A stretch of DNA of 64,000 nt, taken from positions 915,333 through 979,332 of the forward strand of contig JAHDYR010000007.1 in the NCBI GenBank assembly GCA_019828565.1. The letters are read 5' to 3'. Under the pieces are notes generated by a model. That model was not told where the DNA came from. It did no database searches and saw only the letters and a program-made list of their open reading frames with translations. Below are positions 12,155-62,780 of the stretch, piece after piece. The stretch is from Carpediemonas membranifera BICM (lineage: Eukaryota; Protista; Fornicata). Within the stretch, counting starts at the first letter, position 1; every line of letters begins with the position of its first letter. The position numbers and the translations under genes were made by a program.

Positions 12155-14680
12155 ATGTACAGCACAACCGGGACAATGCCGCGTACTCCGCGGCTCAAAA
12201 CGCCCCGATTCAAAAGTGTTGATGTTTTACCTACTCCTGCTGGGAAGACGGTGAACTTTGCGGCTCTCACCACCTCTACCAAGCAATCTGTACATACTTT
12301 CATGCGCATCCGCCGCTATTTGCCCCATATCGATGCCACTTCGGAGTCTTGCATCGAAAAGCGCGACAATAGGCTATACATTGGTCTGGAAGGGGATGGC
12401 GATAGCCGTACAGCTGTGAAGCCCCAGGCCGTCCTCGCCGACACGTGCACACAGGCCGATGTGTTTGACGAAGTGATGGGCGGTCAGTTCGGCCAGAGCG
12501 GCATCTATCTCTGCTACGGCCTCACCGGCTCGGGAAAGACGCACACGATCTTTGGTGACGAAAATGATGAGGGCCTTCTCTTCCGCGCGATCTCCCGCCT
12601 ATTCGCCAACAGCAACAATCAAATGGGCGACGAGAACTGCCTCCCCGCCATTGAGGTTGAGATTCTTGAGATTTACTGCGAGCACCTCCATGATCTCGTG
12701 GCCAAGGCCCACGCCACCACCAAGGAAGAGCGCGACGCAGCCTCTAGCCTGAAGCTCATGGACAACGGCAAGGGCGGTATCAGTCTGCAGTCAATGTCAA
12801 TCAACGACTGCTATACGGAGACTGACCTCAAGGCCCGCATCAAGCAAGTCATCGGAAAATACCGCGTCGTCGGCTCCAACGGCACCCACGACGGATCCAG
12901 CCGGGGCCATGTAGCTGTCCGCATCAAGGCCACGCAGTCGGGGTCGACCCACAGCCTGACGTTCATGGACCTGGCAGGCTCGGAGGCCATGGACGAGGAT
13001 AGCAAGGCTTCGGACCAGCGTACGAAGGAGGGGAACGCCATTCGCACGTCTCTCACAGCCTTGGGCAAGTTCATGAGGGATATGACTGAGGACACGTCTG
13101 TGGAGACGCTCACTAAGATCCGAAGCGCCAGCAGGGCAAGCCAGCTCACCCGTTTGCTCTATAGATACGTACTCGACGGCGGTGACCTCAATATCATCGG
13201 ATGTATCGCGTTCAGTGCGGCAGACTACCACCGGACGAAGCGCGTCTTCGATTTTATGAAGAACGTCAAGCACGCCAACATCGAGAACATCACGGCCTCC
13301 AAATGCATGACGGCGCGTGCCATGAAGTCCGCCCGCCGCAACACCATCGCCACGACCCCCACTAGGCGAGAAATGCCCACACCCGGACAGACCAAGCGCT
13401 CCAACCTCGAGTTCCAGACGCTCAAAGACCAGTTGGTGCAGGCTAAGAACGAGAAGGCGGCCCTGGAAGCCCAGCTCACTGACGCTACAGCCAAGAAGGA
13501 GGTCCTGTCAAGCGCGTACAGGGAGGTGGCGACAAAGCTGCTCGCTGAAAGACACCAGCACCAGGATAGTTGGTTGCAGTTTAAGGAAGCCACAGCCGAG
13601 GCCGAGGAGACTGTCCGTCACAACTCCCAGATCCACAGCGAACTGACGCACGCCAGAGAGAGGGAAGCGACACTCGCTCGCTCCTTGGAGGCGGAGAGGG
13701 AGCAGATTTCCTTGCTGACGAACCAACTAGCCGCTCTTGAGGAGAACAAGGACACGCTCCTCCAATGGGGCCGGTCGATGCGGTCCACGATCAAGGGCCA
13801 GCGCATGGAGCTCAAGACCCTGGTTACGTCGACCACAGAGGCCCAGGAGCAGGCCCGCCTGGCCGCTGAGCAGGTGGCCGCCATGGAGCGGGAGATGAGG
13901 GAGATGAGGGCGGCCAACGCGTCGCTGCAGAAGCGGCTGACTCGAGCAATGACTGATGTCCCGCCAGCCCCGGACGCCATGGAGATGGAGATCCTCAGGG
14001 CACGCGTTGCAGAGCTCGAAGACGAGCGGAAGGCGATGAAGGAGCGCAACAAGGAGGCCACACCCCAGTCGGCGATGCTGCGGCACTTTAGGCGGGCTGT
14101 TGGCTCGCCGACACCACCTGGGGTCCATGAAAGCAAGGGCGCGTTGCCCCGCAAGGCAGACGCACCCTCTGCTGCGAACACGCCCGTCGCTGTGATGAGG
14201 AAGGAGATTGGTGTCAACAAGGCCGACTCGCCGCCCGCCAAGCCCGTTCCAAAGGCCGCTCGCCGGGCGAAGAGCGAGGTTGTGGAGGCGGCGAACGAGA
14301 TCATGAACGATCTTATGCCGACATCTCCGTTCTCGACCAAGCCGATGAACGTCAAGCGCGGCACGTTGAGCAAGGAGCGCAGGCCGAAGCGGAAGTCCGC
14401 GCGTCTGGCCAACAAGGGCCTTGCTGCGGTGCTCGCAGACTCTGAATCTGAGGCCAGTTCCGACTGGGGAGAGGTTACACCGATGCCTGTCGGCCGGCGT
14501 CCAGCACCCAAGCTCCACAGCACGACGGAGGAAGTCATGGCAATGCAGGCCCATGGGATGCAGAGTCTAGCGAAGCCCGGGGCCTCCGGCATGTCTGAGG
14601 CTGCGAACCAGCTGCTGGAGAGCGAGGGGCCGAAGGGGAGGGCGCGGAGAAAGCCCCGTAACATAGGGCGGCGTTTGTAG
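12155..14680 (+). CDS. Kinesin motor protein with coiled coil and basic tail
   Basis: P-loop GLTGSGKTHT, LEIYCE, SSRGH, DLAGSE, SQLTRLL. Confidence 0.92.
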   Translation: MYSTTGTMPRTPRLKTPRFKSVDVLPTPAGKTVNFAALTTSTKQSVHTFMRIRRYLPHIDATSESCIEKRDNRLYIGLEGDGDSRTAVKPQAVLADTCTQADVFDEVMGGQFGQSGIYLCYGLTGSGKTHTIFGDENDEGLLFRAISRLFANSNNQMGDENCLPAIEVEILEIYCEHLHDLVAKAHATTKEERDAASSLKLMDNGKGGISLQSMSINDCYTETDLKARIKQVIGKYRVVGSNGTHDGSSRGHVAVRIKATQSGSTHSLTFMDLAGSEAMDEDSKASDQRTKEGNAIRTSLTALGKFMRDMTEDTSVETLTKIRSASRASQLTRLLYRYVLDGGDLNIIGCIAFSAADYHRTKRVFDFMKNVKHANIENITASKCMTARAMKSARRNTIATTPTRREMPTPGQTKRSNLEFQTLKDQLVQAKNEKAALEAQLTDATAKKEVLSSAYREVATKLLAERHQHQDSWLQFKEATAEAEETVRHNSQIHSELTHAREREATLARSLEAEREQISLLTNQLAALEENKDTLLQWGRSMRSTIKGQRMELKTLVTSTTEAQEQARLAAEQVAAMEREMREMRAANASLQKRLTRAMTDVPPAPDAMEMEILRARVAELEDERKAMKERNKEATPQSAMLRHFRRAVGSPTPPGVHESKGALPRKADAPSAANTPVAVMRKEIGVNKADSPPAKPVPKAARRAKSEVVEAANEIMNDLMPTSPFSTKPMNVKRGTLSKERRPKRKSARLANKGLAAVLADSESEASSDWGEVTPMPVGRRPAPKLHSTTEEVMAMQAHGMQSLAKPGASGMSEAANQLLESEGPKGRARRKPRNIGRRL

Positions 14681-15669
14681 TGGATACGGACACCCGGTGA
14701 CTAAATTATTATTACGTCGAGTGTGAGGGTCGGCAAGGAGTCCTTGGACTCGCGCCTTTGTCGTCATGTATCATAAATATGTATCATGAGTGGGCAGGGT
14801 CAATACAGGCTGACCTCAGATTGCCCAACAAGGTGCCGCCGCACATGTTTCAACACAGCTGGCTGCGGTATTGCACTCATCAATTGCCGACGCGTACTTC
14901 ATGCTCCCCGTTCAAACAGTTGGTGACATGGTAACGATGGTGAAGGCTGGTCCGTCAGAGCCCATGTCAACCCGGACTCCATCACTCAATTGGTGCGTGA
15001 ATACATGCTTTAGAGCCCATTCCGAAGCTATATCGGCCATCAATTTGGTTGGTGACATGTTCACCTGACTTTCGAAATCCTCCCGAGACTGCGGGTTCGA
15101 AGCTGAGCGATACCGTCACCTCGACAACTACCATCGAATCGCTGTCGCTCTGCCATAAAGCTTGTAGAGCCCTCTAACATCTGGATCCGGGCCATTACCA
15201 GCGGGCGCACACTGGAAGTATGCGTTTGGAGTCGACCCGAACTTCGATTTCGATGGACATCGAACATGACGAGTAGAGGTCGGAGATGGCTGATACTCAC
15301 ATTCTTGCATCAAAATAGATGGTCATACGGGATGGCTGACCCATCTTTAATTTTTAAACTCCCAACCTTAATTTCAGGAGTCGTCGAAAATGACGACTCA
15401 GTTTGACGCAATCCACCCACAGCCCGCACCCACTAGTGTAACCTCAGCTACTAGGCCTGGATAGAGTGCGATTGCCCCACTAACAGCTTTGAACTCAGTG
15501 TCAGCCGTGATCGCGGTCACCAACCGAACTGTTCATCGCCAGCCTGTCCCTGCATTTGCGCTGTAGCGGAGTTGCCTGGAGGTACAGTCAGTGTAGTAGT
15601 GACAGTTTATGCTCACATGGCCCAGGGAGCAAGACTGCGAGAGTGTGCACTTTATGTTCTGCCATCTGT

Positions 15670-16088
15670 GGTATTTAGAGGTTTATGTGGAGGATTCATG
15701 TAAAGGTGACTTAAGCTGTCGACCCCCCTGGGATGAACTCCAGAGGACTGAACAGGTTCAGTCTGACGGCCCACCTGTCGTAGACCAGAAGGGTAGCGGA
15801 CATGAGGGCGTCGGCCATGGTAAGAGCGACGGTTCTGGGCGGGATCTTGGTTCTCGCTCTAGCAGAAACTAGGAATGCGGCAGCTTTGGACGCGCACATT
15901 GGGATGTTGGAGCCATCCGGCCGCGGATTGATCACAGTTGGTTTGACGCGGTAGTGCTTGTACTGTTCCTCCTTGAACTTGACTTCCTTGTCCACCGGCA
16001 TGGTGTTACCGACCGTGACATCGATCACCAGTGGGTATCCGCCTTTCGGGTCCAGGACGAATAGGTCCGCTGTTCTCCGGGTGAGCTT
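15670..16088 (-). mobile_element. RLE retroelement 3' fragment, copy within repeat unit 1
   Basis: Matches 19830-20248. Confidence 0.7.
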
Positions 16089-16760
16089 GCAGAGCTCGAA
16101 GACGAGCGGAAGGCGATGAAGGAGCGCAACAAGGAGGCCACACCCCAGTCGGCGATGCTGCGGCACTTTAGGCGGGCTGTTGGCTCGCCGACACCACCTG
16201 GGGTCCATGAAAGCAAGGGCGCGTTGCCCCGCAAGGCAGACGCACCCTCTGCTGCGAACACGCCCGTCGCTGTGATGAGGAAGGAGATTGGTGTCAACAA
16301 GGCCGACTCGCCGCCCGCCAAGCCCGTTCCAAAGGCCGCTCGCCGGGCGAAGAGCGAGGTTGTGGAGGCGGCGAACGAGATCATGAACGATCTTATGCCG
16401 ACATCTCCGTTCTCGACCAAGCCGATGAACGTCAAGCGCGGCACGTTGAGCAAGGAGCGCAGGCCGAAGCGGAAGTCCGCGCGTCTGGCCAACAAGGGCC
16501 TTGCTGCGGTGCTCGCAGACTCTGAATCTGAGGCCAGTTCCGACTGGGGAGAGGTTACACCGATGCCTGTCGGCCGGCGTCCAGCACCCAAGCTCCACAG
16601 CACGACGGAGGAAGTCATGGCAATGCAGGCCCATGGGATGCAGAGTCTAGCGAAGCCCGGGGCCTCCGGCATGTCTGAGGCTGCGAACCAGCTGCTGGAG
16701 AGCGAGGGGCCGAAGGGGAGGGCGCGGAGAAAGCCCCGTAACATAGGGCGGCGTTTGTAG
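16087..16760 (+). pseudogene. Duplicated kinesin 3' tail (no motor domain)
   Basis: Matches 14007-14680. Confidence 0.85.
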
Positions 16761-17749
16761 TGGATACGGACACCCGGTGACTAAATTATTATTACGTCGA
16801 GTGTGAGGGTCGGCAAGGAGTCCTTGGACTCGCGCCTTTGTCGTCATGTATCATAAATATGTATCATGAGTGGGCAGGGTCAATACAGGCTGACCTCAGA
16901 TTGCCCAACAAGGTGCCGCCGCACATGTTTCAACACAGCTGGCTGCGGTATTGCACTCATCAATTGCCGACGCGTACTTCATGCTCCCCCGTTCAAACAG
17001 TTGGTGACATGGTAACGATGGTGAAGGCTGGTCCGTCAGAGCCCATGTCAACCCGGACTCCATCACTCAATTGGTGCGTGAATACATGCTTTAGAGCCCA
17101 TTCCGAAGCTATATCGGCCATCAATTTGGTTGGTGACATGTTCACCTGACTTTCGAAATCCTCCCGAGACTGCGGGTTCGAAGCTGAGCGATACCGTCAC
17201 CTCGACAACTACCATCGAATCGCTGTCGCTCTGCCATAAAGCTTGTAGAGCCCTCTAACATCTGGATCCGGGCCATTACCAGCGGGCGCACACTGGAAGT
17301 ATGCGTTTGGAGTCGACCCGAACTTCGATTTCGATGGACATCGAACATGACGAGTAGAGGTCGGAGATGGCTGATACTCACATTCTTGCATCAAAATAGA
17401 TGGTCATACGGGATGGCTGACCCATCTTTAATTTTTAAACTCCCAACCTTAATTTCAGGAGTCGTCGAAAATGACGACTCAGTTTGACGCAATCCACCCA
17501 CAGCCCGCACCCACTAGTGTAACCTCAGCTACTAGGCCTGGATAGAGTGCGATTGCCCCACTAACAGCTTTGAACTCAGTGTCAGCCGTGATCGCGGTCA
17601 CCAACCGAACTGTTCATCGCCAGCCTGTCCCTGCATTTGCGCTGTAGCGGAGTTGCCTGGAGGTACAGTCAGTGTAGTAGTGACAGTTTATGCTCACATG
17701 GCCCAGGGAGCAAGACTGCGAGAGTGTGCACTTTATGTTCTGCCATCTG

Positions 17750-18168
17750 TGGTATTTAGAGGTTTATGTGGAGGATTCATGTAAAGGTGACTTAAGCTGT
17801 CGACCCCCTGGGATGAACTCCAGAGGACTGAACAGGTTCAGTCTGACGGCCCACCTGTCGTAGACCAGAAGGGTAGCGGACATGAGGGCGTCGGCCATGG
17901 TAAGAGCGACGGTTCTGGGCGGGATCTTGGTTCTCGCTCTAGCAGAAACTAGGAATGCGGCAGCTTTGGACGCGCACATTGGGATGTTGGAGCCATCCGG
18001 CCGCGGATTGATCACAGTTGGTTTGACGCGGTAGTGCTTGTACTGTTCCTCCTTGAACTTGACTTCCTTGTCCACCGGCATGGTGTTACCGACCGTGACA
18101 TCGATCACCAGTGGGTATCCGCCTTTCGGGTCCAGGACGAATAGGTCCGCTGTTCTCCGGGTGAGCTT
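17750..18168 (-). mobile_element. RLE retroelement 3' fragment, copy within repeat unit 2
   Basis: Matches 19830-20248 except one C lost near 17805. Confidence 0.7.
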
Positions 18169-18840
18169 GCAGAGCTCGAAGACGAGCGGAAGGCGATGAA
18201 GGAGCGCAACAAGGAGGCCACACCCCAGTCGGCGATGCTGCGGCACTTTAGGCGGGCTGTTGGCTCGCCGACACCACCTGGGGTCCATGAAAGCAAGGGC
18301 GCGTTGCCCCGCAAGGCAGACGCACCCTCTGCTGCGAACACGCCCGTCGCTGTGATGAGGAAGGAGATTGGTGTCAACAAGGCCGACTCGCCGCCCGCCA
18401 AGCCCGTTCCAAAGGCCGCTCGCCGGGCGAAGAGCGAGGTTGTGGAGGCGGCGAACGAGATCATGAACGATCTTATGCCGACATCTCCGTTCTCGACCAA
18501 GCCGATGAACGTCAAGCGCGGCACGTTGAGCAAGGAGCGCAGGCCGAAGCGGAAGTCCGCGCGTCTGGCCAACAAGGGCCTTGCTGCGGTGCTCGCAGAC
18601 TCTGAATCTGAGGCCAGTTCCGACTGGGGAGAGGTTACACCGATGCCTGTCGGCCGGCGTCCAGCACCCAAGCTCCACAGCACGACGGAGGAAGTCATGG
18701 CAATGCAGGCCCATGGGATGCAGAGTCTAGCGAAGCCCGGGGCCTCCGGCATGTCTGAGGCTGCGAACCAGCTGCTGGAGAGCGAGGGGCCGAAGGGGAG
18801 GGCGCGGAGAAAGCCCCGTAACATAGGGCGGCGTTTGTAG
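18167..18840 (+). pseudogene. Duplicated kinesin 3' tail (no motor domain)
   Basis: Matches 14007-14680. Confidence 0.85.
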
Positions 18841-19829
18841 TGGATACGGACACCCGGTGACTAAATTATTATTACGTCGAGTGTGAGGGTCGGCAAGGAG
18901 TCCTTGGACTCGCGCCTTTGTCGTCATGTATCATAAATATGTATCATGAGTGGGCAGGGTCAATACAGGCTGACCTCAGATTGCCCAACAAGGTGCCGCC
19001 GCACATGTTTCAACACAGCTGGCTGCGGTATTGCACTCATCAATTGCCGACGCGTACTTCATGCTCCCCGTTCAAACAGTTGGTGACATGGTAACGATGG
19101 TGAAGGCTGGTCCGTCAGAGCCCATGTCAACCCGGACTCCATCACTCAATTGGTGCGTGAATACATGCTTTAGAGCCCATTCCGAAGCTATATCGGCCAT
19201 CAATTTGGTTGGTGACATGTTCACCTGACTTTCGAAATCCTCCCGAGACTGCGGGTTCGAAGCTGAGCGATACCGTCACCTCGACAACTACCATCGAATC
19301 GCTGTCGCTCTGCCATAAAGCTTGTAGAGCCCTCTAACATCTGGATCCGGGCCATTACCAGCGGGCGCACACTGGAAGTATGCGTTTGGAGTCGACCCGA
19401 ACTTCGATTTCGATGGACATCGAACATGACGAGTAGAGGTCGGAGATGGCTGATACTCACATTCTTGCATCAAAATAGATGGTCATACGGGATGGCTGAC
19501 CCATCTTTAATTTTTAAACTCCCAACCTTAATTTCAGGAGTCGTCGAAAATGACGACTCAGTTTGACGCAATCCACCCACAGCCCGCACCCACTAGTGTA
19601 ACCTCAGCTACTAGGCCTGGATAGAGTGCGATTGCCCCACTAACAGCTTTGAACTCAGTGTCAGCCGTGATCGCGGTCACCAACCGAACTGTTCATCGCC
19701 AGCCTGTCCCTGCATTTGCGCTGTAGCGGAGTTGCCTGGAGGTACAGTCAGTGTAGTAGTGACAGTTTATGCTCACATGGCCCAGGGAGCAAGACTGCGA
19801 GAGTGTGCACTTTATGTTCTGCCATCTGT

Positions 19830-20303
19830 GGTATTTAGAGGTTTATGTGGAGGATTCATGTAAAGGTGACTTAAGCTGTCGACCCCCCTGGGATGAACTC
19901 CAGAGGACTGAACAGGTTCAGTCTGACGGCCCACCTGTCGTAGACCAGAAGGGTAGCGGACATGAGGGCGTCGGCCATGGTAAGAGCGACGGTTCTGGGC
20001 GGGATCTTGGTTCTCGCTCTAGCAGAAACTAGGAATGCGGCAGCTTTGGACGCGCACATTGGGATGTTGGAGCCATCCGGCCGCGGATTGATCACAGTTG
20101 GTTTGACGCGGTAGTGCTTGTACTGTTCCTCCTTGAACTTGACTTCCTTGTCCACCGGCATGGTGTTACCGACCGTGACATCGATCACCAGTGGGTATCC
20201 GCCTTTCGGGTCCAGGACGAATAGGTCCGCTGTTCTCCGGGTGAGCTTCTTGGGCGCCGGGGCGTTAAAGTGCACTGCAGGTTCGGTGTTGTCGTTTGTT
20301 GTT
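19830..20303 (-). mobile_element. 5'-truncated non-LTR retrotransposon; restriction-like endonuclease (RLE) C-terminus plus 3'UTR
   Basis: TEPAVHF..RRTADLFVLD..LVIDVTV..KEEQYK fits the RLE pattern EP..RPD..IDVT..K..KY; no reverse transcriptase present; 3' boundary approximate. Confidence 0.72.
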
Positions 20304-20317
20304 TAGACTCAACAATT

Positions 20318-20358
20318 CTAATCCTGCGCAGCACACTACCTCCACTCACCCACTTCAG
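20318..20358 (+). repeat. Direct repeat, left copy (pairs with 21853-21893)
   Basis: 19-nt exact CTAATCCTGCGCAGCACAC, then pyrimidine-rich sequence to CTTCAG; 41 nt in both copies. Confidence 0.8.
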
Positions 20359-20359
20359 C

Positions 20360-21736
20360 CCTCGTCTCACCCTAAGCGAGCTCGACACTGAGGTTGCCGC
20401 CATAGCCGCCGATCATGGCATGTATCATCCCACATACATGCATTGCCCGAGGAGCAGCGGGTGGGTCGCACTGGTACCGTGGCCGAGGCCCTCGTCGGCG
20501 TGCTGTCGTGCGTCACGCGCATGAGTGCTGCAGTGACCAAGCTGGTCACACTCACTCGTGCCGTGAACCTCGAGCTCAGTCAGGCCCTGCCAGAGCCGAG
20601 GCTCATTCCGTTCGTGCCGATGGCCGGTCAGGCCTGGGTTCATGACCATCGAGCGCGGAGTAACAGCGCTCACCCCAGCGATGAAGCGGCGCCTCCGTGT
20701 CTATCGGGATTGGTCAGCGAAGAGCAACTTGACCGACGAGCAGGTTGATAGATACGAGCGTGATCACGGTGACATCACCAAGCTCCGCAGAGTGCTCTCT
20801 GTGAAGACAGACGGGGTCTCTGTTGCTGTGACCGTTTGGGTGGGTCGCGAGAAATACCGTGGCGGTCGGGTGGCTGACCGGCCCACGTACAAAAAGGGTA
20901 GCAGCAACAAGCGGGCTCGGCTCGGTCAGGATGACGCCGAGGCTACTCCTGCCCCGGACATTCAAGCTCTCATGGGCTTCGACCCTGGTGCTCGGTCGCT
21001 GGGCGGCTACACGATCCGCCGCCCAGACGGGCAGAGTGTATCTGGCGTACTCGCTAAGTGTGGCTACACTGCCACCCCCTCTTTCCGCGTGAATATGAGC
21101 GCAGCATCGTTCAAAACGACAAGTCTAGAGGCTCTCAAACAGTCGATTAGGTTTGTCCATGAGAACATCGTTCAGATCATCAACGAGGGGACGAGAAAGT
21201 GTTTCCGCCGTGAGACTTTTGCCAATCACTGTCTGCGCCTGAAGCACTTCGCCCGGGCTGGACGTCAACTCCTGGATGATCTCGGCGGGCGCCCCCCGGA
21301 GCCCATTCACCTCGAAGTCGCGTATGGGGCTGCACTGTTCGGTTCCGCCGGTACTCCCTCCTGTGCTCCGTACCGCCACTTTGCTCGAGCTCTCCCTGGC
21401 ATCATGTTCCGGCACAACGTCGTCGTGAGTGTCACGATGGTCTCGGAATTCCGCACTTCCATCGTGTGCCCATACTGCAAAGCACACTTCAGACGTGTGG
21501 TGCACACACACCGCGCCATGCTCTGCCAGAATCCCGCGTGCGAGGGAGCTCCATGGCGCGTTGAACGGCTACGTCGGCATCCCGAGCAGAGAGACATACT
21601 TCTCAATCTCTCTCACCGAGATAAGAGCGCCAGCGAGAACATCCTTTGGTGCACCTTCGATGCAACTTCAGATCAGATAGAGCAATCTCCTTTCCACTAC
21701 GACTCCCAGAGAGGTGCTCTTCCTCGCTATCATTAA
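20360..21736 (+). mobile_element. Fanzor1-type (TnpB-derived) RNA-guided endonuclease; RuvC-containing ORF 20642-21736, upstream part frameshifted at ~20624
   Basis: RuvC-I GFDPG (D at 20981), VAYGAALF, rearranged RuvC-II SEFRTS (E at 21446), CPYC..CQNPAC zinc finger, RuvC-III HRDKSASENI (D at 21620). Confidence 0.88.
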
Positions 21737-21790
21737 CTTGCTAAGTTGAGCAAGCACGCGCTGCAGCGCGCGTGATATGCAGCGCACGAT
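21737..21790 (+). ncRNA. Candidate omegaRNA scaffold / element right end
   Basis: Hairpin CTTGCT-AAGTTG-AGCAAG (21737-21754), palindrome CGCGCTGCAGCGCG (21757-21770), alternative stem GCGCTGCA/TGCAGCGC (21758-21785), all directly after the Fanzor stop. Confidence 0.4.
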
Positions 21791-21852
21791 TGATAGAGTA
21801 TGATGAACCACACTGCGATCCTGATGCTGCTTGGATCACTGTGTGTTTTGGA

Positions 21853-21893
21853 CTAATCCTGCGCAGCACACCATCCTTCCTTCATTCCTTCAG
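21853..21893 (+). repeat. Direct repeat, right copy (pairs with 20318-20358)
   Basis: Same 19-nt core; ends in CAG immediately before the POP5 ATG. Confidence 0.8.
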
Positions 21894-32249: not shown

Positions 32250-32352
32250 TATAATTCGGGCTGGGAGCGCAGACTCAGGGACGCCATCGCCCAGTGACGG
32301 GGGGTTGACAGCCTAAGCCTTCTTTACATGAACCCCCAGTAAACATCTAAAT
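32250..32352 (+). repeat. Second short 3'-terminal remnant of the RLE retroelement family
   Basis: GGGGGGTTGACAGCCTAAGCCTTCTTTACATGAACCCCCAGTAAACATCTAAA matches 371-425 and the element 3' end. Confidence 0.68.
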
Positions 32353-32622
32353 CTTAAGACGTGAGTAGGAGGGTGACAGGGCAGTGTTGCGCAGTATAAA
32401 CACATTGTTCGACCCTTCATTAGCACAGGGACTGAAGCATTAAAGTGCGGATTGAGCCATGGAAGCCGGTCTACCATTTCTGGATTAATTCATGGTTAAT
32501 GGGCCTCCCGAAGCACGAATGCCTTTTCAGTCACGAAAAGCCGTCTTCTCCTTTGTCGAGTTATACGCAGAGTCTCAGGGTTTGCATTTTTCTAGCGTTC
32601 ATTTCTTACTCTAGGATTCTCC

Positions 32623-58149: not shown

Positions 58150-58384
58150 TCTTTGACCAGCTTAGGGCCCGCTTGTTGTTGCAACCCTTCTTGTACGTGG
58201 GCCGGCCAGCCACCCGACCGCCACGGTATTTCTCGCGACCCACCCAAACGGTCACAGCAACAGAGACCCCGTCTGTCTTCACAGAGAGCACTCTGCGGAG
58301 CTTGGTGATGTCACCGTGATCACGCTCGTATCTATCAACCTGCTCAGTGGTCTAGTTCTTAGTTGCTGACCAATTCCGATGACA
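58150..58384 (-). mobile_element. Fanzor fragment corresponding to ~20699-20930
   Basis: Reverse complement nearly identical to 20738-20895, with more diverged edges. Confidence 0.9.
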
Positions 58385-62141: not shown

Positions 62142-62478
62142 AGACACGCAGGCGCCTCTTCATAGCTGGGGTGAGCACTGTTACTCCGCGCTCGAGGATG
62201 ATGAACCCAGGCCTGACCGGTGCCATCGGCACGAACGGAATGAGCTTCGGCTCTGGCAGGGCCTGACTGAACTCGAGGTTCACGGCACGAGTGAGTGTGA
62301 CCAGCTTGGTCACTGCAGCACTCATGCGCGTGACGCACGACAGCACGCCGACGAGGGCCCCGGCCACGGTACCAGTGCGACCCACCCGCTGCTCCTCGGG
62401 CAATGCATGTATGTGGGATGATACATGCCATGATCGGCGGCTATTGCGACGTACTCAGTGTCGAGCTCGCCTAGGGTG
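62142..62478 (-). mobile_element. Fanzor 5' fragment corresponding to ~20368-20702
   Basis: PEEQRVGRTG..PFVPMAPVRPGFIILERGVTVLTPAMKRRLRV; highly similar to the 20.4-kb copy. Confidence 0.92.
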
Positions 62479-62780
62479 TCGAGAAAATCCTGTCGTACAC
62501 CCAGCCGATCACGGAGGAGCGTACGCACCCGTTCTAACCCAGCACGAAGACTGGTCAGGTACCCGGGTGACGCGCGCGAGAGCTGCTCCAAGGTTGAGGA
62601 CGCTGTTGAAGTTCAGTCGTTGCCGCCAGCGTGTGCGGAGGTGAGATCAGGAAGATCATATCGAATCTTTAGAGGACGGTGATAAATCAAGCTTAGCACT
62701 GCTGGCTGTGGCTGTGATTGTGACCGTCGTTGCCCAAGTTCATGACTTGGTGACGAGTCGACACAGCACCGCCATCACCA

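Follow-up and report, generated by a model that had tools for sequence, protein, structure and literature searches.

The locus and its Fanzor1-type protein

The window, a 64-kb stretch of the Carpediemonas membranifera genome, contains a mobile element copy with a 364-aa ORF that represents the C-terminal half of a 642-aa Fanzor1-type protein of this organism (Table 1), the initial annotation having rightly suspected a metamonad-like host. The ORF matches residues 279–642 of the intact protein with 95% identity; the first 278 residues are missing, a truncation not recognised in the initial annotation. The span given there, 20360–21790, does enclose the ORF, while both ends of the element (19827 and 21870) lie outside it. 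The copy is broken by a deletion of about 860 bp (element nt 64–919) and by two frameshifts (1-bp and 2-bp deletions) ahead of the ORF. It is dead, and the full enzyme cannot be made from it, while a supply of guide RNA may still be possible.

Table 1. Parts of the element copy, related sequences and host features (positions in the window)
Feature	Position	Strand	Remark
Host target motif GCASTTTAWG, promoter-like	19807–19816	+	10 bp before element
Left target-site duplication (TSD) copy, 5 bp, CCATC	19822–19826	+	
Left end repeat, outer part	19827–19839	+	starts TG; 3' LTR in retro orientation
5'-truncated 3' piece of PD-(D/E)xK (RLE-like) ORF	19840–20301	-	ORF 19871–20275; inserted at TTTAGA within left repeat; family by motif
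Left repeat, inner part	20302–20335	+	TTTAGA again, then 30-mer ending CA
Polypurine tract	20336–20356	-	immediately inside left repeat
Internal deletion junction	20367–20368		~860 bp lost: 5' UTR, start codon, most of REC
REC-coding remnant	20368–20641	+	1-bp and 2-bp deletions
Fanzor1 WED-RuvC-zinc finger ORF	20642–21736	+	
Predicted omegaRNA scaffold	21737–21870	+	hairpins 21737–21754 and 21755–21774; terminal stem 21778–21791 paired with ~21855–21868
Right end repeat, 31 bp	21840–21870	+	10-bp deletion; ends CA; within scaffold
Right TSD copy (21871–21875) and predicted guide region	21871–21890	+	host Pop5/Rpp14 leader, probable ATG 21894; guide position inferred
Related fragment, element nt 1391–1600	58167–58376	-	90% identical to full element
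Related fragment, element nt 944–1384	62144–62583	-	93% identical to full element
Extra left end and RLE piece in 2080-bp tandem unit	15667–16088	+	second copy 17748–18168
Related 43-bp repeat (Ty3 LTR type), then purine tract	32385–32427	-	11 bp behind target motif

The two related pieces reported earlier at 58.2 and 62.3 kb are indeed present on the minus strand and are consecutive parts of one copy, with 3.75 kb of host genes (proteasome ATPase, DeoC-like) between them and no element ends nearby. Upstream of the ORF, a 2080-bp unit is repeated three times at 14007–20248 with 99.9–100% identity; it comprises a kinesin 3' end, a spacer, the left element end and a partial RLE piece, and its junction is also present in public contigs. 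Across the window, long host ORFs lie almost all on the plus strand.

All motifs named in the initial annotation are found within the window ORF. FDPG of RuvC-I has its Asp codon at 20981 (D392 of the intact protein), and DPG is kept in three families. The Glu of SEFRTS (codon 21446, E547) stands six residues before the first Cys of the zinc finger, C554; the canonical TnpB position of this residue, 47 aa before the zinc finger, is occupied by the Gly of AYG (codon 21326, Gly 507), and no Glu is present there. The zinc finger consists of CxxC at 21467 and CxxxxC at 21524 (C554, C557, C573 and C578), and HRD provides the RuvC-III Asp (codon 21620, D605). The WED domain bears a Fanzor1-type TDG at 334, and the length of the intact protein (locus L009) falls within the Fanzor1 range of about 600–800 aa. 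According to Yoon et al., the Fanzor fingerprint combines DPG with a Glu placed six residues ahead of the zinc finger, TDG being the mark of Fanzor1 (PMC10711439), and the motif spacing in the ORF agrees with it.

Protein sequence searches returned Carpediemonas proteins alone, with no match to any known Fanzor; Pfam, NCBIfam and PDB sequence searches gave a weak zinc-ribbon match and nothing else, PF07282 matching weakly in six of ten members. Metagenome and viral scans revealed no relative, and two pattern matches were rejected as chance. In the ESM Atlas (score 0.98), giant-virus clusters of 600–800 aa with a Cas12f-like TNB domain were matched at TM 0.59–0.64 over residues 9–635. Two AlphaFold models from shallow alignments reached pLDDT 39.6 and 32.1, too poor to show the D-E-D geometry, and Foldseek with the poor model placed Cas12f, SpuFz and GtFz on top with non-significant E-values. 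The motifs, the relocated Glu, TDG and the ESM Atlas fold match are in line with the Fanzor1-type protein initially proposed, and it is very probable that the protein is a Fanzor1. A 22-member cluster of Carpediemonas Fanzor (P0032) is named ‘cytosine deaminase’ in NCBI, apparently by misannotation.

A genome search gave 118 matches belonging to two or three families, most of them 90–98% identical (family 1) and a further group at about 50–55%. Because the matches are so many and mostly so alike, a chance origin of the ORF is dismissed, and the recently mobile multi-copy family postulated at the outset is recognised as a young one. In the protein alignment, two further lineages retain the D-E-D triad and the zinc finger. 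The ORF is intact in one of the 16 copies having the start region; the selection signal is weak (pN/pS 0.56; shared versus private changes, p = 0.13), and private changes (97 non-synonymous, 30 synonymous) look neutral. One Fanzor (L030/P0002) is chimeric, with the N-terminal part of the second family, the RuvC part of family 1 and a crossover near FDPG.

Element ends, target site and Ty3-type relatives

The family-1 element is about 2.44 kb long, has one long ORF and carries at both ends a 30-bp direct repeat, a motif present in 232 copies in the genome. Once the copies were collected, as had been proposed, the true termini proved to be TG...CA, with end units that are 41-bp direct repeats and an exact 5-bp TSD at 19 of 22 distinct loci, window included. 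The 30-mer is thus not a long TSD, since the true duplication lies outside it, and a spliced leader was likewise rejected because the 30-mer has 232 copies only and belongs to a TG...CA unit with TSD. The terminal inversion is merely 4 bp, without longer terminal inverted repeats. The left unit is followed by a purine-rich tract on the minus strand (87 copies), which is retained in all 14 deletion derivatives, and solo end units with TSD exist. No transposase or integrase is encoded in the element, in agreement with the earlier remark that the window shows no cognate transposase. For the carrier, then called unknown, the choice is now narrower: a shell of integrase type that derives from an LTR.

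Only 4 of 19 copies have the same 30-mer on the left and on the right, variant sharing being slightly above independence, and the inner 11 bp of the left and right end units always differ, in a fixed way. After the 5' repeat of family 1, neither a primer-binding site (TGG) nor a palindrome of at least 6 bp was found. Read on the minus strand, both end units have a target-motif-like sequence 8 bp from the unit end, a candidate LTR promoter. The right repeat also harbours another short insert family, apparently with an 11-bp duplication, at L008:2728-2783 and L011:2719-2830 (Fanzor orientation).

Most left ends (22 of 24) contain, at TTTAGA, a 28–470 bp 3' piece of a PD-(D/E)xK ORF. These pieces have a constant 3' end and ragged 5' ends, with 20 distinct junctions, two of which are common to different insertions; the shared junctions are simply explained by DNA-level movement. 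By its motif the piece looks like the tail of a non-LTR retroelement, no named family having been returned and no intact parent ORF found, and both target-primed insertion and template switching would fit. A TnsA-like transposase was rejected in view of the constant 3' end, the ragged 5' ends and the occurrence of the piece away from the element too. Pieces of a second RLE-like subtype are present in the window at 353–426 and 32298–32352, the former directly behind a GCASTTTAWG-like motif without an LTR unit.

Insertions are located immediately upstream of host start codons. Of 28 left ends, 26 (one of them inside another copy) have a GCASTTTAWG-like motif that ends 9–11 bp before the element, against a background of 2.4%. 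Of 31 right flanks, 18 have an ATG ORF on the same strand that is at least 100 aa long and begins within 70 nt (p = 2e-4 versus the most lenient background). Among 34 window genes without an insertion, 5 are likewise preceded by the motif (p = 8e-4; opposite strand, 3 of 34), and the motif is likely a promoter element.

The origin of the ends is revealed by a 43-bp repeat related to the family-1 end unit. Among the matches listed, this repeat forms at least nine direct pairs 4551–4555 bp apart, and at least eight of the nine hold an RT-RNaseH (PF17919) on the opposite strand, its offset being nearly constant; one of the nine pairs is the 4.55-kb Ty3-type element at G000 C1:1344451-1349004. Since direct pairs enclose RT-RNaseH, the 43-bp unit can be identified as a Ty3-type LTR of very small size. 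The same repeat, followed by its own purine tract, heads the approximately 53% Fanzor group, and at 15 exact-match sites it stands 11 bp from the identical target motif (control, 0). Solo 43-bp units are nested in or beside family-1 ends (L026, L042, L045 and L018), which suggests that the same target sites are used repeatedly. Coordinates alone served to assess the 4.55-kb Ty3 elements, the long copies of RLE and the majority of flanks in other Fanzor families.

The anatomy of the element, its ends, TSD and target motif, and the homology of the ends to Ty3 LTRs are established. From this homology it follows that Fanzor lies antisense in an LTR-derived shell, the left end being the 3' LTR. In two respects the element departs from a non-autonomous Ty3 derivative: its twin LTRs are not identical and it has no primer-binding site. 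An autonomous Ty3 with the family-1 repeat was not seen among the matches listed, and a tRNA primer site on the Ty3 43-bp repeat was rejected, as no tRNA-type TGG site is present. Canonical twin LTRs are identical, whereas here the repeats differ and the primer site is absent; canonical LTR copying is therefore doubtful.

Predicted omegaRNA, guide and TAM

The 134–144 nt past the stop codon are predicted to form two hairpins and a long stem closing at the element terminus. The second family (flank of L006) has a matching three-stem layout in different letters, with z of -6.8 on the Fanzor strand versus -2.3 on the other; in family 1 the folding signal is modest and does not depend on strand (z -1.5 to -3.2 versus -3.5). 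The 3' omegaRNA anticipated in the initial annotation thus takes the shape of an omegaRNA-like predicted fold in two families. Fanzor1 RNAs are known to incorporate the element end in the scaffold (PMC10711439). As the predicted scaffold ends at the element terminus, the guide would consist of the TSD and the host leader that flanks it.

The target-adjacent motifs (TAMs) of known Fanzor1 are 4–5 AT-rich bases that adjoin the target and include the TSD (PMC13565253). The collected element copies, which were also expected to define a TAM, show no conserved one next to the guide: the TSD and the preceding 5 bp carry at most 0.3 bit, and conservation is found at -20 to -11. Unlike in known Fanzor1, the TSD of the Carpediemonas element is random and cannot serve as TAM; with so little information at the adjacent positions, the TAM must lie at an offset or be relaxed, if one is used at all.

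Propagation of the element and comparison with known systems

On balance, it is probable that the element is non-autonomous, with Fanzor1 as its sole gene lying antisense between ends derived from short Ty3/gypsy LTRs, and that it spreads by Ty3 copying in trans together with homing. A Ty3-derived shell is supported by the target motif shared by both repeat types, the cross-family chimera, the solo repeats with TSD and the purine tract retained in 14 of 14 derivatives. Reverse transcriptase and integrase of Ty3 would copy the element in trans via a minus-strand RNA. Because the element has a purine tract and no primer site, minus-strand DNA would have to jump in from a helper RNA, a second jump passing through the 30-mer; such a route would account for a left end that is a whole LTR and a right end with only the outer 30 bp. 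Ty3 integrase would then insert the element 9–11 bp behind the promoter-like motif. The plus-strand transcript would yield both Fanzor and omegaRNA, the right LTR remnant forming the terminal stem and the host flank serving as guide.

The most likely benefit of Fanzor would be homing: when the host mates, an empty allele would be cut by the RNP and then receive the element through homologous repair. The host is predicted to be haploid, has gamete-fusion genes and lacks NHEJ (PMC8516963), a setting favourable to such homing once mating has occurred; public contigs revealed no empty allele and no sign of expression (the contigs are probably DNA, and X1 and X2 seem to be runs of a single data set). 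Given the random TSD, the TAM would be expected to be either offset, with the motif 5–15 bp upstream of the protospacer, or relaxed. A more specific version is offered tentatively, namely an RNA-guided homing nuclease on a retrotransposon shell, whose scaffold was rebuilt from the LTR, for which the promoter motif serves as TAM about 5 bp from the protospacer, and which cuts only empty alleles.

The TG...CA ends and the 5-bp TSD are also compatible with a cut-and-paste DNA transposon, in which an unseen Ginger-like integrase would read the LTR-derived ends and Fanzor would put the excised element back, its role in other Fanzor1 elements. The standard model is one of restorative homing (PMC13565253). 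Both the nearly independent inheritance of left and right repeats and the RLE junctions common to different insertions accord with a DNA transposon. Such a transposon is nevertheless unlikely: the terminal inverted repeats do not exceed 4 bp, the ends being direct repeats that match the LTRs of RT-bearing elements, the purine tract is always retained, and no such transposase occurs among the best 150 of 716 integrase matches. Still less probable is an LTR-derived shell in which Fanzor no longer homes and is either a passenger or, as an RNP, binds the leader of the neighbour gene and changes its transcription. Retention of the D-E-D triad, the zinc finger and the omegaRNA layout across families only 50% alike argues against this, and the 15 of 16 broken ORFs that seem to favour it may include false frameshifts in the repeats of a nanopore assembly; the neutral-looking private changes, guides directed at transcription-start regions and the missing adjacent TAM speak for it.

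It would be surprising if the guide were fixed, that is, if the scaffold stopped before the right 30-mer and the latter directed cleavage to the left repeat or to a solo one, downstream of a TTTA TAM. TTTA, which is similar to Fanzor1 TAMs, does precede the left repeat (TTTG the right one), and most left ends are altered at this very point. However, in both families the 30-mer takes part in the base pairing of the predicted terminal stem, all full copies would cut themselves, and the RLE junction coincides with the TAM instead of the distal cut site.

Non-autonomous Ty3/gypsy derivatives of the TRIM/LARD type have TG...CA termini, a 5-bp TSD, a purine tract and solo repeats, and depend on a helper. 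The Carpediemonas element has the same structural features and would also need a helper; it differs in its 41–43 bp repeats, unequal twin ends, lack of a primer site, antisense nuclease cargo and an RNA that uses the LTR. LTR elements such as Tf1 and Ty3 integrate at host gene promoters; unlike them, the Carpediemonas element lies at a fixed distance of 9–11 bp from a 10-bp motif and in a single orientation to it. Ginger/TDD DNA transposons (PMC2836005) share the integrase-type TG...CA ends and a short TSD, while the Carpediemonas element has no inverted repeats and no transposase was found for it.

With Fanzor1 systems (SpuFz1, GtFz1, PpFz1 and SfAV Fanzor1; PMC10432273, PMC11423790, PMC10711439), the family has in common DPG, the relocated Glu, TDG, the zinc finger, a length of about 640 aa, a three-stem 3' RNA using the element end (predicted here) and many non-autonomous, truncated copies. 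It differs from them in the absence of detectable protein sequence similarity, the metamonad host and ends that are direct LTR-type repeats instead of inverted ones. Fanzor2/IS607EU has a serine recombinase partner, a dinucleotide crossover and no TSD, whereas the Carpediemonas element has one long ORF and a 5-bp TSD.

By the sequence features tested, this is a new Fanzor1 family, carried by a promoter-targeting shell of LTR origin. We infer a mode of action like that of a non-autonomous Ty3 derivative, with a putative RNA intermediate, a predicted omegaRNA and putative RNA-guided DNA cleavage. No paper joining Fanzor and Carpediemonas was found, and the main Fanzor papers and supplements examined do not name this organism. 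According to a 2026 review, no Fanzor-encoding retrotransposon is known (PMC13565253), and the Carpediemonas family would be a counter-example. The range of Fanzor1 is widened to Metamonada, by a protein whose link to the known ones is missed by sequence searches. The random TSD leads to a sharp prediction of an offset or relaxed TAM, which is relevant to editing tools, and the family would indicate plain allelic homing as the selective force.
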